DNA of 64,000 nt, taken from Phaeosaccion multiseriatum (taxonomy: Eukaryota > Protista > Ochrophyta, other classes). Under the pieces are notes generated by a model that had not been told where the DNA came from, searched no databases, and saw only the letters and a list, made by a program, of their open reading frames with translations. Made by a program: the position numbers and the translations under genes. Below are positions 5,196-44,700 of the stretch, one piece after another (positions within the stretch are counted from its first letter, which is position 1; each line of letters opens with the position of its first letter). The DNA lies in NCBI GenBank assembly GCA_965112735.1, contig OZ218951.1, positions 682,001-746,000 of the forward strand, given 5' to 3'.

Positions 5196-7448
5196 ATGGT
5201 CACTGGCTGGCTCACGCACGGATGGGACGGAGGGAGGCGTGATCACAACCACGAGCGTCGGAAGCAGCTGCGCTTCCATTTACGGGACGCTGAAGTGCTG
5301 GGGACTGTAAGTGCCATGCATGCATGCAATTATCTCTCCCCCCTTTCTTTCTCTCTCTCTCTACTGGCTGATTCTACTTCTCCCGTCTTGTTTGCTCTAT
5401 TCAGCTCTTCCGAAGGGCAGCTCGGCCTGGGGTCTAGCCCAGCGGCGCGGTAGGGGATTCAACAGGGGAACTGGGTGACAACTTGGACACCACCGACGTT
5501 GGGACTGGGCGCACTGCAATAGCGCTTGGCGGCTCTGACTCCAGCATGTGTGCCGTGCGGGATGACGGCACTGTGGTGTGCTGGGGATTTAATAACAAGG
5601 GCCAGCTCGGAGTGGTGAGTCTGACGTAGGTGGCATCCATGATTGCCTTGCGTGGCGAGCATCAAGTATTAAGCAAGTAGTATCTAACGCCTCCGTTCTT
5701 CTCATTCATTGACCAGGGCCACAAAACCGAAGTAGTAGCTGCCTAGGCCTCTCAAGTGGTGAAATGGGTGACGACTTGACTTCAGTGGACCTCGGCACCA
5801 CGGCCACCGACGTGTGCGGCGGTGAGCAAGTGCAAGAGATGGGAAGCCTACTCTAGCCTCTTTGCGCCCCTTCAATACACTTCCCTTGCCCTTCTCTCCA
5901 CCCCATCGTACTCACAGGCGAATACAGCCACTGTGCCCTGTTGAGCACATCAAATGTCAAGTGGTGAGGTTGGAGGCCTAGCTTGCGCTGCTGCTCTTGG
6001 TGAGGTGACCCGCAATGCCTCCTTACCCGTCCCCCTGTTTCTGTCTTTTCTGCCTCCTCCAGCTGGGGAGATAACGCTTACGGGCAGCTTGGACAGGGAA
6101 ACAAAGACACTTGGGAGACAGTTCCGGAGCGATGTCGTCGTTGGTAAGACGTTGCATGAGGGCCAGACCCAGGTGTAGGTGTGGGTGGGGGGGAGGGGGG
6201 GGGGGAGCCTAATCAATCAGATGACCCAACCCTCGCCTCACATCCTCTCTGATTGTGTCTGATGTGTCTCTGCACCCATAACCGAAAGGCCGTCATTGAC
6301 TTGGGGAGTGGAGTCACGGCAACGGTGATCACATGCGGCTTTAATCACAATTGTGTGGTCAGTGAACAGGGAGTTGGAGAGGGCGAGACGGGTGCCACAG
6401 GCACAAGACTGATCAATAACGCCTTCTTCTCTTGCCCTGCTGTGTGCCGTGCTCCTGTACAGATCACGAACACGGCCAGCGTACTCAAACACTCCTTCTA
6501 TGCCACCTTTTGTCCAAAGGGGGCCTCAGCCATCCGTCTGTGTGCTCTCGTCATCCACTGCCTCTCGACAGGGGAAACAACGCATGGGGCCAGCTGGACG
6601 TGGATGACGGGGACCCCATTGGAGACGGCGCGGGGGAGATGGGGGACAGCTTGGGGGAGACCGATTTGGGAGGGAGTTACACCGCCCTTGCAATTGTGGC
6701 AGGCAAATATCACACTTGCGCGGTGAGACGAAGAGCCAACGTCGAGGACGAGCGAGGCGGAGTACTCTCTGCTGCTTACTGATGTCCTCCCATGGCACTC
6801 CTGCCTCTCCCCCTCTGCCTCCGCGCTATCTCGACGCTCCAGATCCGAAATACCAACGACGTGGTGTGCTGGGGAGAAAATGACTACGGTGAGCTGCTGT
6901 AAGGAGCGAATCGTAACGAGTGATGAAGGCTGAGCGGTGGTGCATGCTGCGGTTGCGGTTACCGTTCAGCTGCAAAACGAGTCCTCCTTCCTCTCTCATC
7001 CACCCATCTTGCCATCTTGTGCTTTGCTTGTTCGCTCGTCTCAGACGGCCATTGACCTGGGCACCGGCACAAACGCCACGGCCATCGCGGCGTGCTATTC
7101 TTCCACGTGCGCCATTTTCGACACAGGTGGGTCACAAAGGCATACGTTGCTGGGTCTTGCTGCCCCCTCCCCTCTTCGAATCCTCACACGAGCATACCTT
7201 GTTTCATTTCCTCCTCCCCTCCCGCCCGCCCCGCAGGAGGCGTCAAGTGTTGGGGCAGGAACGATTACGGAGAGCTTGCTTCAGGGAACAATATTGACCT
7301 CGGGAACGGGTCGAGCGAGATGGGCGATAGCTTGAGCGTCCTCGACTTTGGCACGGGGCGGACTGCGGTGTCCATCACCGGCAAGGGCAACCACTTTTGT
7401 GCGGTGCTGGACAATGACGACATTGTCTGTTGGGGACGCAACAACTAG
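5196..7448 (+). pseudogene. RCC1-repeat gene, pseudogenised fragment
   Basis: Multiple repeats of the type EMGDSLxxxDxGTGRTAxxIxxxxxHxCAxLDxxxxxCWGxNxxGQLG across spliced exons. Frameshifts near 5440 and 5745; premature TAG at 7446-7448. Confidence 0.8.
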
Positions 7449-9702: not shown

Positions 9703-11418
9703 GCGCCCCAGCCCACGCGGGGGGGGGGGTTGGGGGCGAGTGAGGAGGATGTGCACACGAATCCAAATCTTTCGCTGTTTGCTCATGTGAACGCTGAGTT
9801 CGTTCTTTTCTCGAAATCATTTGGTGTCGAGCTTCTGGGGTGTTGGCCCTTATATTATGTATGTGAAGGGGGGCTCTTCCCCCTGCCACACACAGCAGAA
9901 GGGACGAATTTCACCCCCTTGCGGAGTGTTAGGGTGGGCAGTAGCAGTTACAACAGTGGAGGAGGCGTGTCGTTGAATATCCTTTTCATCCCCTTGCCTC
10001 ATCTTAGGCACCACCAAATGTTACGTGTGGAGCCTGGCAAGGTACAGTGAGTGAAGAGAGAGAATGCATTTTGTAATCCGGGACGGAGGAGGGGAAGGGG
10101 CCATTCGCCCACCTGCCCCAACACTGTTCTCGTAGTTTAAAGTCTTAACAGTTTTAATGGAGCAATATTGTTGTGGAAATCGATTGTGTGACCTTTTCTG
10201 CTCGTCCAGATGCGCTAGACGCCTCCCAGTCCAGACGTCAAGTGGGTGAAGTGGGAAGTCCCGTGCATGTAAATCAGGTGAGACGTCTAGCGCAAGCACT
10301 CCATTTTGTTTGCTCCAGTGTAAGGAGCACACTCCCTTTCCTTCCTTCCTTCTTTCATTCTTTCGTTCTCTCCTCCGTTCCTTCTCCGCCTGCCGTCCTC
10401 TCTAGGCCGTTGCTGTGCCTGCAACTCAACTTGTCACAGCAGTCTTCCCCTTGGGTCAATACAGTACTCGATCTCAGCTGTTTGACATGCATCAAATCGA
10501 ACCCCTCGATGAAAGATTTCGATACTCAGGATGCGTCCGCCAGAATCTGCCCCAGCACTTCCTCGCTCAGCGGAATGGGATTGCCCGCCATGCTGCTGCT
10601 GCCCGCCGCCAGAGATGCCACCTTGGCCCACTCTGAGGGCTGCAGCCCGTACGCCGAGAGGCCGGGGATGCAGAGGTCCACCGCCACTGCGGACAGCCTT
10701 GTGAGTTGGTGGACCGGGGGGTGGGGCCGGGGGGGTTGGCGACGACGGCAGCGGCAGAGGGGAGAGTGTGAGGGTAGGGGGGGGTGGGAGTCGGTTGGGG
10801 GGGGGGTGTGCGCACGAGAGGATGAGCATCAAGATGGAGAGTGCGTTGGGTGTTGGAGTGGGGAGAGTGTGTGTGAGAGTGGAGTGTGTAAGAGCGTGCT
10901 TTAACAGTGGGTGGGACCTTGAGTGTGCGAGGGAAAAGAGACTGGATTGGGGGAAGCGAGCAGAGAGGAGCGCAGCGCCCTGGCTGTTTGGTGACCCAAA
11001 GCTCTCTCACAAGTCAGGAAGGAAGGAAGGAAGGAAGGAGGGAAGGAAGGGCACTGTACGGCCTCAAAGGGCCTAAGCTCACACATCCCTCTCACTCACC
11101 ACGCCACTCCCTCCTCCGGGCTGGCGGTGGGGCTGCCCGTAATGAGTCGAGCAGTCTCCTCGTGCCTGGCAAGCGCCTCAGCGTACTCCGGCCCCGCCTT
11201 TGTGGGGGAGAGGGGAGGGAGGAGACCGAGAGGCAAGGCATCAGTCGAGAGGTGAACGTCCCATGAAATAGGCTCACAAGAGGAGCATATGTAAGTGCAT
11301 ACATATACTCGCAATCCCTATCCTTTTTCTCTCGATCGCTCTCTCTCTCTCTCTACTCGATCTCTCTTTCTCTCTCTCTCCCTCCCTCTAACCAACCTCT
11401 CTGTAAGCTTCGCTCTCT
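9584..11418. repeat. Segmental direct duplication, copy B
   Basis: Matches 2452-4297. Confidence 0.95.
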
Positions 11419-14400
11419 CTCTCACTCACTCTCTGCCTTGCTCTCTCTCTCTTCTTATCCTCCTTTCTCTGTCTCTCTGTCTCGCCCTCTCTCCTCTCCC
11501 TCCGTCTCTCTCTCTCCGTACCTCTCTCAGTGCCTTGACATTGGCGGCGAAGACGAAAGGAAGAAGCCTCGCGCAGATGGCGCCATGAGGAGCTTCCTCG
11601 CACACACCTGCAATTGTGTGAGGACAACACGTAATAGAATGTGTGATGAAGCACATCCATATGGGGGTAAAAAACAGGTTGCGACAATGGCAAGGTGAGG
11701 GGATGGCAGTGGACGAGCGGGGGGGGTTGATGAGCAGGCGCATCTCTTCAGCGATAGCGTAGCGAGGACTTCGTTACTGCCGAAATATCCATACCCATAT
11801 GCGTGTGTGTGTGTCTGTCTGTGCGTGCGTGTAGGTATGTCTCTCTCTCTCTGTGTGTTGTGTGTGCGGCGTGTGTGATAAATGTGTGTGGGTGCTCCCT
11901 GCGCCTCTCTCTTCGCTCTCTCTCCCTGCCTGCCTTTCTTGGCTCTCTCTCCCTGCTTTCTCTCTCTTAGCTCTCTGTCCCTGTCTCTCTCCCTTCCCGC
12001 CTCTCGCCCTGCCTCCCTCTCTTGGCTCTCTCTCCCTGCCTTTCTCTCTCCCTCCCACAGTCTGTTCTGCCTCACTCCCTCCCTCCCAACCTCACCTCCC
12101 AGCACCCCCGCGAAGCCGTGTACCGCCCCCAGCTTGGCATTGGCCAACGCGTAACCGCCCATGACGCTGGCCAACGCCATGTCTTGCCTACGGACGGACA
12201 ACCAACAGCAGCACGAGGAAGGAGGTATATGCCATTAGGAGAGAACCACACAACCAACATTTGCAGCAGGAGGATTAGGCCTTGCCTTGCATGCTCCTTC
12301 ATCAACCCCTGAACAAGTGGGTCGAAAACAATTAGTTCAACACTGACACCCCCTTCCTCCTCTCCTGTCTTCTCCTGTCCTGTCCTGTCCAGTCCTCAGT
12401 GCTCTCTTCTCCTCCTCCTCCTCTTAGTCAGGCAGTCACCTCGCTGCCATGTCGCTGCCGTCTCTATAGGCGCTGCGAATACTCCTCGCAGCGCGGATTA
12501 TGCCCTCTCGTGCAAACGCATCGGTGAAGGGATTGGCCTGGAGACGGAGGGAGAGGGAGCGAGGGAGGGAGGGAGGGAGGGAGGGAGAGACGGGGAGAGA
12601 GACAGGGTGAGAGACAGCGCGCAGGAGATAACACACAAAGTGTGAGGGACCGTGCGAAAATCAAATCAACCCCCTCCTTTGCTTAACTCTCAACTCCCGT
12701 TCCATCTCCCTCCCCCAGTGCGCCATCACGTCCACGCTGATACCAAAGCAGCAGTAGCAGCAGCAGTAAAAACTGAACACACTCACACTGGACACTGGAC
12801 AGGCTCACCTTGCAGCTGACGAAGGGCTCAATGCACTGCGTGAGGGCGTCGAGGCCGGTGCAGGCGGTTACGAGGGGAGACGCTGAAACCGTCAGGAAGG
12901 GGTCCACAACCGCCACATCGGGCATCATGTAGGGGCTGGGAAGGGGGGACGGCAGTGGATGGGGGGGGGGGGGGTGTCAGTGTAGGGAGGAAGACAAGAT
13001 GATAAGATAAGATAAGATAAGATAAGGTGAGACGGCTTCGTTCTTTGCAGGGGTTGGGCATCCTTCTTTACCTTCGGATGGAGGCCTTGATGCCCTGCTC
13101 CTCAGCCTTGACGACGGCGTTCTTGGTCACCTCACTGCATAGCACCGCAAGAGTGGGGGGGGGGGGAGGAGAGGGAGGGAGGGAGGGAGGGAGGGAGGGA
13201 GGGAGGGGATGGAGGGAAGGAGGGAGAAGTGAGGCAGAGGGAGAGGGAGAGAGGAGCGGAGAGGGGGAGGGGGAGGGAGAGGGAGAGGGAGAGGAGAGGG
13301 AGAGGGAGCAGGAGAAATGAAGGAAGGAAGGAAGGAAGGAAGGAAGGAAGGAAGGAAGGAAGGAAGGAAGGAAGATGGAGAGGGAGGGGGAGGGGGGGGG
13401 CTTCAGCTCCGATTCCTTTCCAGTACAAGTAGCGCGAACACAGTAATGAGGCAAAATAAAGTTACCGACAACGCAGTAAGTCAATAGAATCCCTTGCCTC
13501 CCCTTCCAACGCGGCACAGACCTCCCTGTGCCCGCTGTGGTGGGTACAGCGATGTACGGCAGAGAGGGCTTGGACACCTTCTTGCCCCGCCCCACCACCT
13601 CAATGTAGTCCATCACATCCCCCTCATTGGCGAGGAGGCAGGCGAGGGCCTTGCCTGGGGGTGGAGGGTGAGTGGGTGAGGGGGTGGGGGGTTGAGTGAG
13701 TGAGTGAGTGAGTGAGTGAGTGAGTGAATGGTTGAAGGAGCACGGCGCAGCACTGACCCGCATCGACGACGCTCCCACCCCCGATGCCGATGACAATGTC
13801 GCAACCCGCGGCCGTGGCTGTGTCGAGGCCCGCCTGCACCGAGGGAGTAGGACAGCGGGCATGGAGGGAGTAGAGAGACATTAGGCGCCGGCCCAGGCCC
13901 AAGCAATGCGTAGACCGGACAGGTACGGGCAGGTACGGACACAAAGAGGGCAGGACGGAGGGGCGGAGGAGCGGGAGACAGAGACACGCCTAGACGGACT
14001 CAGGTGAGGGGTGGAGCGACTATTAACATCCAAGGAAGGAAGGAAGCAAGGACTGCAGACCTGAATGCTTCCGATGGTGGGCTCTGCCGTTACAGAAACC
14101 ACGCGGCACTTGTCCTCTCCGAAGGCGGCCTGCACGGCGACCACAAGCTCGCCCGCAGAGCCCTCCCCCTTTGCTCCTCGTGCTCCCGTGACGATGAGCG
14201 GCTTGGAAGCGTCGAAGCCCTTGGCGATGGACGGCACCTGAGACGCGCGGGGAGAGAAGAGGGAGAGAGGGGGGGGGAGAGGGGTGGAGAGAGAGGGGTG
14301 GGGGGGTGGGGGTAAGAGGGCGCGGGAGAGAGAAAGAGGGGAGAGATGGGGAGAGAGCGTGAGAGTGGGAGAGAATGAGAGCGAGAGGGGGAAGAGGAGA

Positions 14401-16744
14401 ATGAGACGGAAAGAGAGAGAGAGCCTCTGTATAAAGTGATACATCACTACTCTTAACTGTGATACATCACTACTCTTAACTCCCCGCTTCACTCCCTCCA
14501 TGCAATGCGCCACCTCTCTTCACCTGCGCTGCTGACCCTTCGCCGAAGACAAGTCGTCCCGGGCTGCCGAATTCGAAGGAGGTGGGCTTGTTGGCGGGAC
14601 TGAGATGGACACAACACAGAGAGAGACAGAAAGAGAGAGAGAGAGGGAGAGAGAGAGAGTAGAGAGACAAGAGAGAGAGGGAGAGAGACGGAGGGAGAGA
14701 GAGAGAGAAAGAGGAGAGGGAGAGAGAGAGAGAGAGCGGGTGGAGGATACAAAGAGACGAGAGGGAGGATAAGAGAGGGAAAACAGAGAGATACCGCACA
14801 GCCCATGAGTGATGCGATGCGATGCGGCAGGGGGGTGCGCGTGAGAGGAGAGGAGAACGCCCCCGCTTCGTCCGCCTCTCCCTCTCCTTCTGCCTCCCTC
14901 CCTCCCTCCCTCCCTCCCTCCCGTTATGCCTATACTCTTCACTTCACAGCCTACCTCATGGTGGCTTGGGCGTGGCTGATTGCCTCTGTCCGGTGCCAGT
15001 GTGCGCTGTGCGGGAAGACGGTTACAAACTTGGTCGCCCCCCGGGGTCTGGCCATCATATCCGCCACTGCATCTCGCCATCGGAGGTAGTGCGGTGTCTC
15101 CTTGTGTGCCGCAGGGCCTGCTTCGCTGTTGTACACCTGTTGGGTGATAGGAGGAGGGAGGGAGGGAGGGAGGGAGGGAGTGAGGGAGGGAGGGAGGGAG
15201 GGAGGGGGTGAAGCAGGGAGGGGGTGAAGCAGGGAGGGTTAGAGCCTACGCAGAGGGACGGGTCCCGTGTTGCTTCTCCCGGGGTGGAGGTGGGCCGAAG
15301 TGAGTCTCAGTGCCGCTGTTCTACACGGTAAGGCACTTTGGTGAGCCTTCCTCACTCGCTGCAAGCGAGCCTCACGCACGCACCCACGCACGAGCGTACG
15401 GACGCCCGCCTTTCTTCCTTACTACTTACTCATATGCTTACTGACTTACCTCAACAAGCACGAAGTTGCTGCTGTCCTCGACCCCTCTGAGCAAGTCGAA
15501 GCGGTGGATGCCTCCCTCTCTGACGCTGTTGCGGCAGTTGTCGAGCGTGTGGAGGATGAAGGCCTCCTCCATGCCGGGCTTGACCTGCACATTATCACAC
15601 ACGTGCATACACACACACGTACACACACATACACACACGCACGTCAGAGCATTTGAGTCAGTGAAAGGGCGGCACAAACACACACACACACAAACACGAG
15701 TAAGTTGGGGTGGGGACATGGCAATACCACCAACTAATCAAGTAATCAATAAATCCCCCCCTCCTCCACACACCCCTCCAAACAAAAGCCTACAAGCGAC
15801 GACGCCGCTCCCACACACACCTCATTAACCACCTCCCCTATGTACCCACCTGTACGTCCACAAGGACCGCCAGCATGGGAGGAGCCCCCGCTGACTCCCC
15901 CTCTGCCTCCACCCCCATCGCCGCTGCCACTGCCTGCCCCGCATCCCCTTCCGAAGCGGAGGCCTCCACGTCCCACAAGGGCCCCCCGGGGAAGAGGGTG
16001 GTGTACTTGGAGGCTCTGCGCGGCTCTGCCATGAGCTCTGCGACTGCGTCTCTCCATCCCGCGTAGTGCGCTGTCTCCTTGTGCGCAGCAGGGGCATCGG
16101 CGTCCTTGTACACCTGTTGGTTGTTTGCGTGTGTGCGTGCATGTGTGCGCGTGTTTGGGGGTGTCTGTGTTTACGGGTGTTTGCGTGGGTGGAGTGTGTT
16201 GTTCATTGTTGTTTGTGCCCACGGGACGAAGTGACTGACGGACTGACTGACGGACTGACTGACTGACTGGCTAACCTCTATGAGACAGAAGGTATCGGGG
16301 TCGTCAAGGCCCTTGAGCACGTCGAACCTCGCCACGCCCTCCTCCCGCATGCTGCCCTTGGAGTTGGCCACGCTGCTCTCCCAAAAAGTGGGTCCCGACG
16401 ACGGTTTCAGAGTCCCAAACACGTGCACCGCTAGCAGGCCGTCTACGGCGAGGGGGAGAGAGAGAGAGGGGGGGGGAGGGAGAGGAAGAGAGAGGAAGAT
16501 GTTTCGTTCAGAGCCCGCCCGACCAACCTTGAGAGATGCACGCTTCTGCACAAAAGAAGAGCGCTCCAATGTGCGGCCACTCAACTCACTCACCTCCATC
16601 CCCGCCAGTACTGCTACTGCTTCCCCCGCCTCGCAAGAGAGTCGCCCGCCCAGACGAGAATGGCGTGGCATTTGCTCCTGCGTCGAGGAAGACGCTGCCC
16701 TCCCTGACGTCGATCCTGCCGCCGCCCCTGCCCCTGCTACCACC

Positions 16745-16783
<39 letters not shown>

Positions 16784-17313
16784 GCTGATCCTGCTGTACG
16801 CATGTCCAGTACCCGGTGCGAGAGGGGAGGGGACGAACCCGTGGATGTGATCGGCACTGAGGAGCAGAGCGGTGGCGAGGCGCTTGAGACCGCGGCCTCC
16901 GGTGCCTGCTGTTGCTGCCTACGGTACAGTAAGGTACAAAGAAAGGGAGAGGTTAATTCAGGGATGTGGAGGGTAAAGGGAGGACGACGAGGCGGACGAC
17001 AAGGACGAGGAGAGGGAAAGGAGGGGTCAGGGTATTGACCTTTCAATGAGTGATAGTCTTCCAAGAGGTGGTGTCAAAAAGAGAAAGATGTTAAGTGCAT
17101 GTTTCCGGCCACAGCCCAGGGTGTAGTCCAAGACGGCTCTTCAGCCCGTCGAGCAGCAGCAAGCACGAGAGTTTGCGCGATGGAAGAAGAGGGCACATGG
17201 GAGGAGCGAGCTCCACCCTCTCACTTCATGATGAGAAGAGAAGAGAAGAGCATGAAAGGAAGGAAATGCAAACTCACCCTCGATGAGGATCGACATGACA
17301 GACGCCACAGCAT
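10526..17313 (-). CDS. Fusion protein: organellar presequence + two LsrG-like (ABM dimeric alpha/beta barrel) domains + iron-type (group III) alcohol dehydrogenase
   Basis: Exons 17313-17278, 16918-~16594, 16442-16276, 16113-15850, 15584-15450, 15136-14955 and 14599-14524, then further exons to TGA at 10526-10528, keep the frame. LsrG motif N..S.REEG..RFD(V/L)L..F.L.EVY....A..AHKET.HY occurs twice. ADH motifs [48 protein letters not shown] and GNP. Confidence 0.88.
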
Positions 17314-17635: not shown

Positions 17636-20431
17636 ATGGCGAAGAAGGGAAGTAAGCCACCTGCGGCTCTCCGCGGAAGGAAAAGCAGTAACAACAGTAC
17701 CAAAAGCAAGAAGAGCAGTAGCGGCAAGGGGGTTCTTAGTAGTCCGTGGGTATCCGCAGCGGTAGTCGCGGTTGTTATCGCCGGCGTCCTTATTGCATAT
17801 CACCAAGGAGAGCCAGCAGCAAAAGGGAGCCACACGACTGGCGAGAGCCAGGCGAGAAAGAAGAAGAGCGCCAAAGCGGATACGGGGAGGCTCCCTGAGG
17901 ACCTATCTAAGCTGCACAAGAAGCGCCTGTTGCAGGTCAACATCGAGAAGCTGCTCCTCTCCTCCAACAACGCCACCATAGAGAACATAATCGATGATAC
18001 GACCAACATGGGCCCTGTCACAGTCTCGTGCCATTACTCCAAGGACGACCAGAAGAAGCAGCTGGTAAACATGACGTTCGGAGATTGGCCAGCGGCCCAG
18101 GACCACACGGCAGTGGCGCTGAGGTCAACAAGTAAGATCTTCGCATCCACCGCGTTTATGAGCTTGGTGGAGTCGGGGCAGTTCGGCCTCAGCCTGGACA
18201 GTAAAGTGGGTGACTTCTTTCCCTCCTGCGGCATCCTCGTCAACTCTTCTATCAGAGAGCTGCTGAGCATGGACTCTGCGCTCGACAATCGCCTCCAAGT
18301 GGCGCTAATGGAGTCGGACTCCTCCGCCGATCACGTGGGCTTCCCGCCCTACTGCGATCGACAGGGCTACAACGTGGAGGAGTGCGTGACGCGTGTAATT
18401 TGCCCTGCGTACCGCCTCCCTGCCGAGCGAGGAGCTGCAGCAGCGGTGGAAAGAGACACCGGGGGCTCGGAGGAGGAAGAGGGGAAGGAAGGGGGAGGAG
18501 AACAACCAAAGGATGGAGCAGAAGAAGAGGAGGAGGAGGAGGAGGAGGAGGAGGAGGAGGGGTATCGCTTCGTGAAGAGCATCTTGGATGTGCCCGATAT
18601 TAGCTGCGTGGACCGCAACGAAAAGTGCGCCCTGTGGGTGAAGCATGGCTTCTGCAGCACGAACCCCCGCTACATGCTCACCCAGTGCCGCGCTGCCTGC
18701 GAGGTGTGCGAGGACAACGGCCCTCTGTGGTACACCAGGGATGAAGCCTTTGGGGTGAGTAGTGACTGGACGGACGGGCGGGCGGGTGGGTGCGTGCGTG
18801 CGTGCGTGCATGCGTGCGTGCGTGGGTGGGTGGGTTGATAGGAGGGTGGAGGCGTATGCGGCTTGGGCGCGGGGATGGGGAGGAAGGGAGGGAGCGAGCG
18901 AGGGAGGGAAGACAAACTGCACTTAGACAAAGAGAAGCGGCCGCGGGCCAGAACTAGATTGATGCGGTGATAGCTCTCCCACGCCCTGCTGCCCCCCCCC
19001 CCATCCACTGCCATCGTTGTTGTGCTTCTGCTTGCTTGTGCTGGCCTTGTTCTTCTGTGGTCACTCGCTTCGTCCGAACAGGGCGGCAGCCTCGTGCGAG
19101 TGGCGGGAATGTCTTGCTCCTACGATAACTACGCATACACGCTCGTCGACGCGATGGTGCGCAGGGCCTCTGGTACGTGACTTACTGACGTTGCCTTGCC
19201 CCTCACCCTTCGCCCCCCCCCCCCCCCCCCCATGCGACAAGCCGCGCTGCATAAGTGGATACGGCACACACTCGAGACCGGCGTGATGCTCTCTTGCAGT
19301 GCTGAGAGCGTCACCTCTTGTGCTCCTTGTTCGCTACTTCGTTCAACAGTTCGAGCTTCTAACCTCCTCCTCCTCCTCCTCCTCCTCCTCCTCGCTCGGT
19401 GCTTTTCTCTCTGCAACCAACGTTTCACGCGTCATGAATGCCCCCGACAACCCCTCGACCAACAAGGCCGCCCTCTGCTGCACTGGATCTTGGAGAACAT
19501 TGCTAAGCCCCTACAGCTGAGCGATATGCTGCACTGCATAGAAGGAGAGGGCAAGGAGGAAGGGGAAGAAGCAGCAGCAGCAGGCGCAGCAGAAGGAGGA
19601 GGGGGAGGAGGAGGAGCAGAAGGATCAACAGCAGGGACAACAGGAGGAGGAGGAGGAGGAGGACCGACCGTGTGCTACGGCCCTCCTGCGGATGGGGACA
19701 TGACCAACTCAACGGCCTGGCCCCTGTGGAGGGGAGGACAAGAGTCGGTAAGCGTGTCACACACACACCGGACAGCGAGAGCGGGAGGGTTGGGGGGGCT
19801 TCCAAGGACTGCTGGACTGTGTCGTTGTCCCGGGTTCTGCTTTGCCCTCACCCCCTCCCCTCCCCCCCCCTCCCCCCCCTCCTCCCAGCAGCCGACCGCT
19901 TGCCCTTCCTTGTCCTCATCTCACGCTTCCCAACTGTTTTGCTTCTGAGCTATTTTGTGTAACTGCCGTCCCCCTGGTCCGTCCGAAGAAGTAACGCTCT
20001 GTTTTGTTGTGCTGATTGGGTATACATTGGTAGGAGAATTGGGTGTCCAACTCTCTGCTGGCCTCTGTGACGGATGTGACGACGTTTCTGGCTATGATGA
20101 CCAACGGGGGCTCTCTCAACGGCACCCGAATCATCAGGTAAGGCACCTTGAGGGTTTAATTGTGTTTGCTTGAGTGGCTCCTGCCCAGCGACTGAATGAC
20201 TTGGAAATCTCTTCACTTGGAGGAGACACGCAGGCGCCATTTGCTCCTCTTGTCCCACCGCTGCTGCTCGCACTTCGCTGTTTCTTCTCTCACGCGCACA
20301 CGTGTCTCTCTTCTGTCTCTCCATCTCTCTGTCTCACGTTCTTCTCTCCTCCCTCTCACCCCTCTTCCTCCTTTTCTCCTCGTTCCTTCCATCGCTCACC
20401 CCTCCCTCTCTCTCCTCTTCTCTCTGTGTCG

Positions 20432-25506: not shown

Positions 25507-27583
25507 GAGTACTGCTCTTTGTCCTTGTGCTTCTTCCTGCAGAGAGGGAGGCGGAGGCGGAGTCGGAGGCCTCGGGGGGGGCAGGAGGGGGGACATACCG
25601 AGTGATTGGGGAGGAGGCCGCGACCGTGCGCACCCTTCCGGGAAGCCTGCGGGGAATGAAGAAGGAGATGATGGCGATGGGAGAGGGGGGCAGGAAGAGG
25701 AGCTTCTGGTCGCTTCTCGGCACGGTGCGCTGTACCGCGTCTCTGGAGGGGAGAGGTGTGCTGTATCACCAACTGCTACGGCTGCCAGAGCGGCGAATGG
25801 CCCTTCAGAGCCTCTGCTTCTGCGGATAGTGTGGCCGGTTGAGGCGGTTGCCGCTGCGAAGATGGACGCAACAGCAGCGGTTGGTGATACAGCTGCGCCC
25901 AGTGTGCTCGAGTATGGGGCCGGGTGCCACACAGAAGACGCAGGGAGTAAGCGTGAAACCTCCGAGCTAGGCAGGGGTGGGGAAGAGGAAGAGATGTCGG
26001 AGGTGAATGGCGCGGCCGATGCTGTGATGAAGGGAATTACCTGCGAGACGGAGCCGGGAGAGCAGCTGTCGCTCTCAGTCCCTTTCTTGCCGGCGGATGT
26101 GTCGCTCCTTTCAGCCTGCTTGCACCGGCAGGGTAGGCTGGTTGGGCTGCTGGTGCTGCCCAAGCTGATGTACATGCTGGTCGGTATGTCTGGGTCTTGG
26201 AAGCCCCTTAGCCTTCCTGAAGCGTCCATGTGCGTCTCTTTCCTCGTGCCCGGTCCCCTACAACAGCAGCGAGAGCCGGAGAGGGAGGGGGGGGATGACG
26301 GAGACGAAGCTGAAGACCAATGCCATAATCCTCAGCAGCAGCAGCAGCAATCCGAACTCTCTCCTACCGCCTTGGTGCTCTCTGTGTCGAAGCGTGGGTG
26401 CGTGACGGTGTCTGAGGTTGTTCCTGACGCGAAAGGGTGCTTGAAAGCGATGCGGAGGGGCCAGAGTGCTCTGCCGGGTTGGACATCGGCCGATGCTACT
26501 GCGGTGGGAGGAGCAGCAGCAGAAGCAGCAGGGGTTGGTGATACAGGCCCAGCGGCATCGGGGGCAAGAGGAAGGGGGAGCAGAAATGGTCTTCGGGTCT
26601 TCTGCACTACCCAGCGCGTTGCTTCTGTGGATCAACCCCAAGGCGACGCATCTGTTCTCATTGGCGTCGACGTTTCGGAAGAAGTGGCCGCAGGTGCAGC
26701 ACAAGAAGGGACAGCGGAGGGAGGCGAAGCAGAGCGTGCAACAAGGAAGGGGGGTGGCTTGACGGGCAGCAGCCACATCTTCAGCCTGGCAGTGGTGGTC
26801 ACCCCCACAGAGTCCACGTCTGAGCTACTCCGGCTGTGGTCAGTGGACGTGAGGGTGGACCTGAGGAGCGACGAGCGACGCGCACAAGCAGGAAGCATAC
26901 CGGCAACAGTTTCGATAGCATCGACATCGATGGGGGGCCCGGTGACACTCCGTTGGCCCACTGTGCACCTTCGGCCGTTGGCCCACTCCACAGAGAGGCG
27001 GAGGAGCAAGAGGAGGGCGGGGCGGCGTACAGGGGCCAGTGGCGGTGATCGGCCTGAGGAGAGGGCCGAGGGGGGGCGGGAGCGAGTACTCGTGCGTGAT
27101 CACGTGCGTGGAACGGACGACAGCCAGGAGCAAGCCAAGGGTGGGCCCCCTTCGAGATTAAGTAAGAATAGATATGGGCATGGGTGTGGGTGTGGGTGTG
27201 GGTGTGGGCATGGGCACACTCTCGCCACTCGGCCTCAACTGGAGGACGTGGTCGAGGGAGTGCTGGTCTTTCGGTGCTGTCGCTGCTGCCGTCCGAGCCC
27301 CGGCTCCAACCCCGGCAGCAGCAAGGCTAAGGCTCGTGAAGGGAGGGGGTGGATGCTTTGGTGGTTGGTATTGCTCGACGAAGTGGGGCGGTGGGGGGGC
27401 TGTATGGGGGATGAAGAGGAGGATGAGGAGGAGGAGGAGCGCAGGAGTCAGAGGAGACCGCAGACCGGAGGGCTTTGGAAGCCCTTCTGGACGTCGTCGA
27501 ACCTGACTGCGTCTCAAGTGATGCAGCAGGCGCAGGAGGCACAGCAGGCAACAGCTGGCGCCAACGACAGTGTAATTCGTTAA
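22998..27583 (+). CDS. Large low-complexity protein with WD40-like repeats
   Basis: Two long ORFs joined in frame by a GT-AG intron at 24441-24544. WD-like segments IATLDFSQSGHLLCAVTMCGHLGMW and ATSLRFSPCDSMMAVGCWDGQVLIF. Poly-D and poly-S tracts. Confidence 0.65.
25191..25262 (+). repeat. Coding (GAT)n, poly-Asp
   Basis: Seen directly; a (TCA)n poly-Ser tract follows at ~25460-25506. Confidence 0.95.
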
Positions 27584-41791: not shown

Positions 41792-44700
41792 CACGCACAC
41801 ACAAACGCACGAACAGGGGGGGCACCGGAACGAGTTAAGCTTCGAAATCGTTGAAGGAGCAAAAGGCAACAAAACAACCTGGGGGGGGGCTGAGCCTCCT
41901 CCTGCAGCACATTCACACTCTCACCCATGCTATGCCCGGTGAAGAGAAGCGTGTAAGGCTCGCCCTCCTCCTCCTCCTCCTCCTCCCCGACCCCGACAGC
42001 AACATCCGCCCCTCCTGAAGAAGTCGGGCAAGGAGGGCAGCACCGCTCTACCACCGCCTCGAGCTCTGCTCTGAGGGACTCAAAGGCCTGGGAGAAGCCC
42101 AAGTGTGCCTGCATCACTGGCGGCCCTCCTCCTCTGTCCGCCTGCCCGTCCTGGCTGGTGTCTTCCTGGCTGGTATTGGTGCTGGTGCTAGTGCTGCTGC
42201 TTGTGCGCTGCTGCTGGTTCGGTCTTTGCCATGGCTGGAAGGGAGTGGGTATGAGGGACACATCCGTGAGAATGTCTTGGGGGTCCTGAGGGAGGGAGGG
42301 AGGTTGGAGGCATATGGGGAGGGGAGATAAAGCGGGTGGGGGAGGTGAGAGGAAGCAGCAAGGACGCGAGACAGGATAAAACAAAGAGGAGGGAAGAGGG
42401 AACAAAACCAAACAAAACGTCCAAAGGAGGATGCTTCGACCCAGCCGCAAGCCACAGCACACCACATCACAGCACAGCACACCACAGAGAAAACGCTCTA
42501 CCTGTGATAGCGCCGACAATGCTTCATCCCCCCCCCGCCTTCAGCACTGGGCACTGTGCCCTGGGCCCTGACCAAGCACCTCACCTTGGTGCCTCTAAAG
42601 CTGACGATGAGTGTCCGCGCTGCTGGCGCCTCGGTGACAACGGCGCAGGCCAAAGCGGAGGAGATGGTGGACACGAGGGTAGTTGGGTCTGTGCCCACCC
42701 CCACCCCCAAGCTCTTGCGCTTCAGCATCTCGATGGTGCCGCTGCGGCTGCGGGCGGAGGCCGAGCCGTGCAAATTGTCTGTGTCGTCTTCGTCTTCTTC
42801 TTCTTCTTCGTCGTCTTGCTGCTCAACTTCCCCCCGTTGCTGCTGCTGCTGCTGCTGCTGTTGTTGTAGTTGTTGCTGCTGCTGCTGCTGGTGCTCTTGC
42901 TGCTGTTGTTGTTGCTGCTGCTGCTTCTGGTTGGGCAGCGTGAGGCCCAAGAGCGGGAGGGGGTCTGTGAGACAGGCATTGTAAGGTGCCTGCGCCGCAA
43001 GGGCCGCGCTGTGGAGGAGCAAGGGAAAGTTGACTCTGTAGGAGCTTCCCACCACCGTGTGCGACGGGTGCGAGATGACGGAGAAGGCCTCCTCCCAGTG
43101 AAGCGGCTGCTGCTTTCGGTCCTTTTGCTGCTCTTGGTCCTTCTGGTCCGACGCCTCCTTCGCTATGCCCATGCCTGGCTTCGGGTCCGCCGTCGTCAGC
43201 ACTCGGAGCACGCTCAAATCGCGACTGCTGCCGCTGCTTTTCTCCTGGTCTGTCTCGACGTGCTGCTGTCCTTCCTTTTCCTCCGCCTTCTCCTCCTCGT
43301 GCCGTAGCACCAACTGCTCGCCACCTTCCCCTTCGCTCCCCAGCCCAGCACCAAGACCAGCAGTACCAGGATCACTAAGAAACTCCGTCCTGTCGTCGCC
43401 ATGACGCTCCTCCCCTCCAAGCTTGCCCTTGATAGCGCGTCGAATACGCTTCCCTCGCCCCTTTAGTCGGCTCGCACCCACACCCACCCTCCTCTTGAGG
43501 GATGATGTGAGGATTGGTGCTCTGGCCGCCAGCGTCGCCAGGGATGTGTTGAGTGAGGCCACGAAGGCAGTCTGTAGACAGGAGAGGGGGGAGAGAGAGA
43601 CAAAGAGGAGAGAGAGGGAGAGGGAGGGAGAGAGAGAGGGGAGAGAGGGAGAGAAGGGAAACGACATGTCAGATGACTAACGAACGTATCATCTAAGCGC
43701 TCTTCTTTTCTTCACGCCCGTCTTTCACATCCCTGCCCCTTCTTCTCCGCGAGGGCGATCGCCCTTCTCACTGACCTTCTCGCTGACCTGCTCCTCGTCA
43801 ATGGCGCTACTTTGACTGCCGCTACTTGCAGCAGTGGTATCTGTCTCTTTCTCAATCGCGCTCGGGCCACCGCTGCACATGCTCGCCCTCTCCTCCTTTC
43901 CAGACACCCCTCCTGCACAGCACACAGCGTACAGAGCACAGCGAAGCGGGAGCGTGGGTATGTGTGGGTGGGTGGGTGAATGGGTGGGGTGGGTGGGTGG
44001 GTGCGTGCGTGTGTGTGTGCGTGGGTAGATGGGTGTGTGGGCGTGTGGGTGTGTGGTGTGTTAGAGGTGCAGGGGCATGCATACAGATGTGGTGGACAGG
44101 AGGGTCGGTATACCGACATTCTCAGTCATGCAGGGTGATAAGATTGGGTTGTTGGTCGACTCATGAGGGAATTCCCTTTCTGGCCCACTCTCTGTGGCCG
44201 CCGACTCATCGTACCTGATGAGGCCCCTTTCCCTCTCCCTCTCCCTCTCCTTCTTCTTCTTCCCCAGTCCTTCGCTCCCTCCTCCCCCTCCCCATCCCCC
44301 GCCGCCGCCGCAGCAGCAGCAGCTTCAGCAAAGGCCTCTGCAGGGGGGATTCGAAAGGAGAAGTCGTACGGCAGCCCGCCCAACCCGTCCGGGGCATCGC
44401 AGTGCGAGTTGTAAAAGAGGATCTCACTCGGGGCGCAGTGCCGCGACAGCAGCTCCAGGCGCCTCAGGATGACGGAGGCAAGCCTCGAGGCGGGCACTGA
44501 GGAGGCCGTTGCTGCTGAGACTCCGTTCTGCTGCGGCAGGGAAGACGGAGACAGGCCAGCACATGGAAAGAGCCAGCAGGGCGGCGGTGGTGGTGGAGTG
44601 GTGGGGGTGGGGAAGGAAGGGAGGGAGGGGGGCAGGCAGGCAGGCCGGCAGGCAGGGGGAGGGAGGGAGGCAGAGAGCGGAGGAGAGAAGGAGGGAGGGA

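Follow-up and report, generated by a model that had tools for sequence, protein, structure and literature searches.

A predicted algal fusion of two LsrG-like ABM domains with an iron-type alcohol dehydrogenase, and its counterpart in a bacterial gene pair

Introduction

LsrG of Escherichia coli (b1518; PDB 3QMQ and 2GFF), the (4S)-4-hydroxy-5-phosphonooxypentane-2,3-dione isomerase, has the ABM fold and is encoded in the lsr operon together with the LsrK kinase, the LsrF thiolase and the Lsr transporter. Here we describe a gene on the minus strand (17313-10526) of a 64,000-nucleotide stretch of DNA, referred to throughout as the window, from the ochrophyte alga Phaeosaccion multiseriatum (GenBank assembly GCA_965112735.1, contig OZ218951.1, positions 682,001 to 746,000 of the forward strand). 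Its predicted product carries two LsrG-like ABM domains in tandem, followed by an iron-type alcohol dehydrogenase (ADH). The algal ABM domains have in common with LsrG the fold, the residues N25/E54/H65/H70 and the RFD, HK and PR motifs, and differ from it in forming a tandem pair that is fused to a dehydrogenase; the closest bacterial ABM family (80 loci) differs from LsrG in having an iron-type ADH gene as its only recurrent neighbour.

Group III ADHs such as methanol dehydrogenase (8ZRL), DhaT (3BFJ) and FucO (1RRM) resemble the algal dehydrogenase in the full-length combination of the Fe-ADH and ADH_Fe_C domains, in the GGGS motif and in the Asp and two His residues of the metal site, whereas the subfamily to which it belongs has Gln in place of the second His, VTG rather than VTD, and Gly, Ala or Ser at the equivalent of His267. 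The E. coli yqhD-dkgA pair combines a member of the Fe-ADH family with a DkgA-type aldo-keto reductase (AKR) against reactive aldehydes and dicarbonyls and has no ABM partner. These are the same two reductase folds as those found fused to tandem ABM domains (see below), although YqhD itself is a distant relative of the algal ADH (E = 1e-15). The closest precedent for the algal ABM part is ArqI (PA0709) of Pseudomonas aeruginosa, an LsrG-like ABM protein whose gene forms an operon with that of the glyoxalase GloA2, both being co-induced by glyoxal; ArqI is a hexamer, binds PqsA and carries a glyoxal-derived modification (PMC12274486). The likeness thus lies in an LsrG-like ABM protein tied to alpha-oxoaldehyde stress, and the difference in its pairing with a glyoxalase instead of a dehydrogenase.

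Results and discussion

A single reading frame of 17 exons

The sequence-only reading of the window had proposed one continuous frame consisting of a presequence, two LsrG-like domains and an ADH, with the exons 15136-14955 and 14599-14524 joined in a Ser codon without a stop. This frame was rebuilt by script from 17 exons and encodes 768 amino acids (aa); its coding sequence of 2307 nt runs from the ATG at 17313-17311 to the TGA at 10528-10526 and has no internal stop, and all 16 introns, of 103 to 488 bp, begin with GT and end with AG. The coordinates of the two joined exons proved exact, the Ser being residue 370, whose codon takes AG from the end of exon 6 and T from the start of exon 7. 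The whole 768-aa model was analysed by local scripts, and single exons or orthologues served as queries in the database and profile searches. The features of the gene, all on the minus strand, are as follows.

17313-17278, 16918-16594, 16442-16276, 16113-15850: exons 1-4
15584-15450, 15136-14955, 14599-14524, 14237-14061: exons 5-8
13833-13758, 13654-13522, 13134-13072, 12935-12809: exons 9-12
12537-12440, 12187-12096, 11607-11522, 11197-11100, 10697-10526: exons 13-17
17278-17313: exon 1, start codon and 12 aa; the sole in-frame ATG able to feed exon 2; donor GTGAGT
16594-16918: exon 2, residues 13-120, an N-terminal extension with much Ser, Gly and Arg; presumed organelle-targeting leader
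15973-16437: ABM domain 1 (ABM1), residues 123-223, in exons 3-4; intron 3 (16275-16114) lies inside
14996-15876: ABM domain 2 (ABM2), residues 256-356, in the end of exon 4, exon 5 and exon 6; introns 4 and 5 lie inside
14955-14995: linker between ABM2 and the ADH, end of exon 6; Ser370 is split by the splice
14600-14954: intron 6, which joins the domains; 355 bp, GT..AG
10529-14583: iron-type ADH domain, residues 376-768, in exons 7-17; assigned by Pfam, NCBIfam and site residues

At 17636, 322 bp upstream of the start of the gene, the long open reading frame (ORF) of a divergent plus-strand neighbour begins and thereby bounds the 5' end of the fusion gene. Splice joints were sought in four public runs that match the stretch (genomic contigs, one sample), and none was found at a splice site; the joints listed in these DNA runs were rejected as splice evidence, being repeat artefacts of 20-29 nt.

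Fused relatives and a second reductase fusion

The junction of the model is matched by fused proteins of other algae. Residues 41-691 of a 691-aa protein of Vitrella brassicaformis (CEM19686.1, A0A0G4FWS3; also present as an MMETSP transcript) aligned to residues 106-768 of the model in one BLASTP segment that runs across the junction, at 54% identity. When 1.84 billion representative sequences were scanned with exon 6, many proteins of 650-725 aa came up in which two stretches matched, and Pfam analysis of six such proteins revealed Fe-ADH and ADH_Fe_C in all of them, together with ABM twice in five and a single ABM match in the remaining one (P0077). In a word search with the Vitrella protein the ABM-ABM-Fe-ADH layout was found in about 40 protein clusters, from chromerids, chrysophytes and a pelagophyte; the members include proteins of Chromera velia, Mallomonas marina (MMETSP1167), Epipyxis, two Pedospumella species and Chrysophaeum taylorii, and one member is an uninterrupted ORF of 653 aa on a 2.2-kb contig. 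The architecture looked for across algae was thus confirmed, but it is not unique to this alga and is already present in UniProt, where the Vitrella, Chromera and Chrysophaeum proteins bear the name 'ABM domain-containing protein'. The linker motif FPxxxHWHRTE..TH, which follows ABM2, is common to the window model and the Vitrella and Chromera fused proteins. As judged by homology, the fusion is very probably real in P. multiseriatum.

A second fusion, in which two ABM domains are followed by an AKR, was present in at least four clusters from different sources. Its AKR part matched DkgA and DkgB best and the methylglyoxal reductase YdjG more weakly. One such gene, on a Tara Oceans scaffold (L083:1969-3798), is intronless and has an Arg-rich, mitochondrial-looking N-terminus. 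In the ABM tree, the two ABM domains of one AKR fusion (P0156) are nearest each other, which is a weak hint that duplication and fusion took place independently there. Proteins of 320-470 aa with two ABM domains were inspected for other fusion partners, and these candidates were discarded, being truncated copies of the same fusion or ABM-ABM-only proteins. That two unrelated carbonyl-reductase folds are joined to one and the same kind of tandem ABM unit is the best available clue to function.

An ABM-ADH gene pair in bacteria

In order to examine the bacterial relatives, one genome for each bacterial and archaeal species was scanned with an alignment of the ABM family, which gave at least 588 matching stretches, and the best 80 loci were kept. 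The proposal that the bacterial best hits of the two parts might be neighbours was borne out, as an Fe-ADH gene lies directly downstream of the ABM gene and on the same strand in 58 of the 76 loci with room downstream; in two further loci the ADH is found 1-2 kb downstream of the ABM gene. The distance from the end of the ABM gene to the start of the ADH gene is usually a few tens of bases, with an overlap in some loci, and the paired ADHs are 48-66% (mostly above 50%) identical to the 384-aa bacterial ADHs, which are the nearest non-fused relatives of the algal domain. The pair spans at least 10 bacterial phyla, the 58 paired loci being distributed among Verrucomicrobiota (18), Chloroflexota (12), Acidobacteriota (10), Planctomycetota (6), Myxococcota (3), Gemmatimonadota (3) and others. 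No third conserved gene was found in the best 80 loci. Recurrent neighbours such as regulators, ABC-F ATPases, ThiF and sulfatases were rejected as partners, each occurring in at most 10 loci, and an apparent neighbour cluster of 31 loci was judged by its coordinates to consist of antisense shadow ORFs of the ADH. An AKR gene was nearby in only five of the loci. The 18 ABM loci lacking an ADH had no common partner (an alpha/beta hydrolase occurred in three), and a stand-alone Anaerolineae ADH had no ABM neighbour.

A fusion also exists in bacteria, in which a single ABM domain and an Fe-ADH form a protein of 489 aa (chromosome OW818685.1, L002:8001-9470); its gene sits between a glycosyltransferase/sulfotransferase cluster and psp genes. 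In a FastTree phylogeny of the ADHs, 41 eukaryotic fused rows (40 from databases and the window model) and four eukaryotic ADH-only rows formed one clade with an SH-like support of 95-99 and with no bacterial row inside, which is weakly sister to Sorangium and proteobacterial operon ADHs in a tree whose root is not known. The breadth of the bacterial pair argues for a bacterial source of the algal gene, and the comparison as a whole points to the algal gene as the fusion of a bacterial module of two genes, in which that for the ABM protein stands directly upstream of that for the ADH. In the ABM tree, which is built on few columns and has modest support, the ABM1 domains form one clade (support 89) and those of ABM2 come close to forming another, the ABM2 of the window grouping with the ABM2 rows of the fused proteins; the duplication of the ABM domain thus appears to predate the spread of the gene among algae.

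The iron-type ADH and its metal site

Exon 10 alone scored 32.5 bits with the Pfam Fe-ADH model (cut-off 31.3), exons 14 and 17 matched ADH_Fe_C, and several NCBIfam Fe-ADH models matched exons 10, 12 and 14. The orthologues scored 126-157 bits with Fe-ADH (PF00465) and 98-113 bits with ADH_Fe_C (PF25137), and the window ADH is 50-55% identical to the bacterial 384-aa ADHs. The site motifs, on the minus strand, lie at the following positions.

14195-14166: dinucleotide-site motif VTG....K
13782-13762: GGGS motif
12856-12827: metal site D..Q
12126-12106 and 11596-11576: metal-site His residues

The first Gly of the GGGS motif (the window reads GGGS), the metal-site Asp and the two later His residues are invariant over 163 sequences of the ADH family. 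The ligands of a canonical Fe-ADH are Asp-His-His-His (196/200/263/277 in FucO numbering). The metal site of the window ADH reads Asp-Gln-His-His, with Gln as second ligand in 160 of the 163 family members, and the templates 8ZRL and DhaT 3BFJ read GLDALTH.IE at this site, with His where the window has Gln. At the His267-equivalent position the window ADH has Gly, and all family members but one have Gly, Ala or Ser. The claim of a group III ADH therefore holds as far as the Fe-ADH and ADH_Fe_C matches are concerned, but the domain is not a textbook member, given the Gln for His and the Gly at the His267-equivalent. By these residues, the predicted ADH is a distinct subfamily of the iron-type (group III) alcohol dehydrogenases with an unusual Asp-Gln-His-His metal site.

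After the second strand, where NAD-type Fe-ADHs such as FucO and DhaT carry an Asp, the family has the motif VTG....R, with Gly at the NAD-Asp position in 159 of 163 members and Arg five residues further on in 149 of 163; the window ADH has Lys at the latter position. The Gly in place of the Asp, along with the nearby Arg or Lys, suggests that members of the subfamily would use NADP(H). None of the named Fe-ADH equivalogs (FucO, GbsB, 4-hydroxybutyrate dehydrogenase, ErcA, SarD, EutG and YqhD) was reached: the Vitrella orthologue, the bacterial fusion and a bacterial single ADH all scored about 240-250 bits at best, whereas the cut-offs are 500-700.

The ABM domains and the predicted structure

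The exon 3 half of ABM1 scored 18.1 bits and exon 5 scored 21.3 bits with the Pfam ABM model, both below the cut-off of 23.1 because each exon holds only part of a domain; the fused orthologues scored 41-92 bits with the same profile (PF03992). LsrG was the only NCBIfam family to match the ABM part, and its model was collinear on the four ABM exon pieces (model positions 17-47 and 56-96, then 10-52 and 56-96), with weak scores of 13-23 bits each. Both window domains aligned to LsrG of E. coli MG1655 over all 96 residues without a gap, at 34% identity, and the Asn, Glu, His and His residues at LsrG positions 25, 54, 65 and 70, said by the sequence-only reading to be kept in both domains, are indeed present in ABM1 and ABM2. 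They are also kept in 80 of 80 bacterial ABM proteins and in nearly all fused orthologues. Marques et al. (2011) reportedly described these four as the catalytic residues of LsrG. In ABM1 the corresponding codons, on the minus strand, lie as follows.

within 16371-16351: Asn at the LsrG position (N26 of the exon 3 piece)
within 16284-16102: Glu at the LsrG position
within 16089-16063: His/His at the LsrG positions

The LsrG equivalog (NF007791, cut-off 135 bits) was not reached, as the Vitrella orthologue scored 117 bits summed over its two domains and a single bacterial relative 66 bits. The nearest solved structure for ABM1 is PDB 2OMO, named 'DUF176' (E = 1e-9 for the exon 4 half and 7e-5 for the other), followed by two LsrG entries; among solved structures 2OMO, of 124 aa, matched each half of ABM1 best, and likewise the Vitrella orthologue, and differs in being an uncharacterised single-domain protein from structural genomics. 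The domains can thus be called LsrG-like, as had been claimed, but they score far below the equivalog cut-off and are closer to 2OMO than to LsrG.

AlphaFold2 was run on the Chrysophaeum orthologue with an alignment of 67 rows. The resulting model is compact, with two ferredoxin-like ABM units and a two-lobed ADH, and has a mean predicted local distance difference test score (pLDDT) of 92.6 and a predicted template modelling score (pTM) of 0.92, confidence being low only in the linkers 121-130 and 245-254. The ABM units appear as two beta-alpha-beta-beta-alpha-alpha-beta folds with a pLDDT above 90. A pTM of 0.92 for three domains suggests that the model has them in a fixed mutual arrangement. 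The tandem pair probably mimics, within one chain, the homodimer that ABM proteins usually form; both this pseudo-dimer and any channel are putative.

Leader and localization

The leader of the window model contains a run of about 11 Ser residues encoded by a (CTG)17 microsatellite (16746-16796, plus strand) in exon 2, owing to which the leader is probably polymorphic in length. Inspected by eye, the orthologue leaders consist of a signal peptide followed by Phe and then by a transit-like stretch (SALA|F in Vitrella, AGA|F in Chromera, and others). Import into red-derived complex plastids is usually signalled in this way, by a signal peptide with Phe after it. The 120-aa leader of the window is atypical by eye: it abounds in Ser, Gly and Arg, and only a short hydrophobic stretch precedes HG|FVP. 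In algae whose plastids are red-derived, plastid import of the protein is probable, and as the colourless Pedospumella keep the fusion gene, its role need not be tied to photosynthesis.

The same type of leader, signal peptide plus Phe, is found in ADH-only algal relatives. ADH-only members of the eukaryotic clade are P0188, P0298-P0300 (Chattonella subsalsa and MMETSP transcripts), P0194 and P0196, each with a signal peptide and Phe, so that fused and split states both occur among ochrophyte algae.

Proposed function and alternatives

We consider it moderately likely that the ABM and ADH parts work in succession, as isomerase and NADPH reductase, on an alpha-dicarbonyl or hydroxy-carbonyl metabolite. 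The ABM domains would catalyse, free of cofactor, the keto-enol (enediol) isomerization of a compound with a vicinal dicarbonyl or alpha-hydroxy-carbonyl group, in the way in which LsrG acts on phospho-4,5-dihydroxy-2,3-pentanedione (phospho-DPD), and the ADH domain would reduce a carbonyl of the same compound, probably with NADPH. We infer the order of the steps, the cofactor, the localization and the class of substrate from the sequences, and catalysis by both parts likewise. As the sequence-only reading had supposed, no characterized enzyme with this layout was found in the literature searched, which contained no description of an ABM-Fe-ADH layout or operon; the module, comprising the gene pair, the fusions and the odd metal site, appears to be undescribed, while databases already list its sequences by generic names. 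LsrG-like ABM proteins have a wide distribution far beyond the bacteria that process autoinducer-2 (AI-2), and the present data would tie one of their subfamilies to carbonyl reduction by three lines, namely the gene pair in at least 10 phyla, the algal fusion and the fusion to a second reductase fold. A 'conserved hypothetical' family would thus be turned into an assayable hypothesis, that of an isomerase and an NADPH reductase acting on a dicarbonyl.

A narrower form of this proposal, which we regard as a rather unlikely candidate, is a plastid repair enzyme in which phosphorylated 4-hydroxy-2,3-diketones, formed spontaneously or by enzyme error from pentose phosphates, would be isomerized in the manner of LsrG and reduced with NADPH to a harmless or reusable 1-deoxy-pentulose phosphate. 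Candidate substrates would be phospho-DPD derived from ribulose 5-phosphate and the pentodiulose phosphates that arise when Rubisco misfires, and the product would possibly resemble DXP (1-deoxy-D-xylulose 5-phosphate) and feed the methylerythritol phosphate (MEP) pathway. Engineering work has used RibB(G108S) or the putative xylose reductase YajO to divert ribulose 5-phosphate to DXP (PMC8227265). Should the substrate be such a product of sugar-phosphate damage, a new route of metabolite repair would be at hand in plastids and many bacteria, and the bacterial ABM-ADH pair would be a widespread, unrecognized damage-control module.

Several points weigh against the proposed sequential isomerase and reductase. 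Complete ADH-only proteins with a leader of their own occur in Chattonella and other algae, and ABM-ABM-only proteins exist, so that the fusion is not obligatory. The junction 14955/14599 of P. multiseriatum is supported by homology, and catalysis by members of the fusion family is a prediction. The ABM domains lie well below the LsrG cut-off, and ABM domains elsewhere can be oxygenases or non-enzymatic binders. Finally, the exchange of His for Gln at a metal ligand leaves the chemistry of the ADH uncertain.

We hold it to be unlikely that the ABM domains work as oxygenases without a cofactor, in the manner of ActVA-Orf6 or the quinol monooxygenase YgiN, with the ADH preparing or recycling the substrate in an oxidative pathway. 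The ABM family is named after such oxygenases, relatives bear the JGI label 'quinol monooxygenase YgiN', and neither the order nor the direction of the ABM and ADH steps is fixed by the sequence evidence. However, LsrG is the sole named family that the ABM part matches, with four key positions invariant, the nearest solved structures are 2OMO and LsrG and not oxygenases, and both fused partners, the Fe-ADH and the DkgA-like AKR, belong to carbonyl reductase families.

The gene might also be two neighbouring genes, or yield an ADH-only isoform, with the ABM-ABM part ending shortly after 14955 and the ADH starting inside intron 6. An in-frame TAG (14952-14950) follows directly after the donor of exon 6, and retention of intron 6 would therefore leave an ABM-ABM-only product. 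Intron 6 also contains one ATG (14806) and one formal mini-exon, 14806-14751, which joins exon 7 in frame and could yield an ADH-only isoform; the separate ADH-only and ABM-ABM-only proteins of other organisms speak in the same direction. Against this, the ADH frame has no ATG upstream of exon 7, the mini-exon has the weak donor GTATCC and encodes a translated CT-repeat, and intron 6 resembles the other introns of the gene, being 66% pyrimidine on the coding strand as most of them are. Moreover, the linker of the fused proteins is present, the model aligns as one segment across the junction, and in the ABM tree both window ABM domains cluster with their counterparts from fused proteins. We therefore regard separate products as very unlikely and retain the single fused polypeptide.

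It also seems improbable that the ABM domains are non-catalytic and, by analogy with ArqI, bind or sense an aldehyde or other ligand, serving as regulator or scaffold of the ADH. ArqI, itself LsrG-like, works by binding a protein and is not known to have enzymatic activity (PMC12274486), and the pTM of 0.92 suggests that in the predicted structure the ABM domains are packed tightly on the ADH. On the other hand, the LsrG-type residues are strictly conserved in both ABM copies and in all 80 bacterial partners, the ancestral state is that of separate genes in an operon, and ArqI was absent among the PDB matches listed for the exon queries (E<=1), the list for the whole orthologue covering E<=1e-10.

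Least probable is a role in quorum quenching, by which the alga would destroy the AI-2 of bacteria (DPD or phospho-DPD). Even though the ABM domains are LsrG-like and algae share their habitat with bacteria, neither a kinase nor a transporter was found as a partner, the plastid-type leaders of the orthologues place the enzyme away from external signals, the best 80 bacterial ABM loci are devoid of lsr-type neighbours and the ABM domains do not reach the LsrG equivalog score. The phyla that carry the pair (Verrucomicrobiota, Chloroflexota, Acidobacteriota and Planctomycetota) are mostly not known as users of LuxS/Lsr, which likewise counts against a role in AI-2 degradation.

Repeats and neighbouring genes

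Two repeats lie within introns of the fusion gene. Intron 7 contains an exact 23-bp tandem duplication of GTGATACATCACTACTCTTAACT in two copies (14436-14481), which includes GTGATAC, a heptamer that likewise ends a dispersed 13-mer of this genome, and a microsatellite, (TGAC)n or TGACTGACGGAC, is located at the 5' end of intron 3 (16232-16269). In all four DNA runs, the summed contig depth of the bin holding TGACTGACGGAC was 100 to 1000 times that of the neighbouring bins, indicating that the motif is highly repeated in the genome.

The first ORF of the divergent upstream neighbour (17636-18838, plus strand) encodes 400 aa and has a partial match to the beta-lactamase family (24.7 bits) that includes STSK, followed by a ShK-like domain (31.2 bits), an unusual pairing. 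On the other side, overlapping plus-strand ORFs at 6253-7448 carry RCC1-type repeats (RCC1_2, 35 bits) and indicate an RCC1-like gene of several exons, convergent with the fusion gene at the latter's 3' end. A dispersed word, CAGTTGGTGATAC, occurs three times in the window with at most one mismatch (25763-25775, 25878-25890 and 43304-43316) compared with 0.05 expected, and two of its copies lie 115 bp apart on opposite strands.

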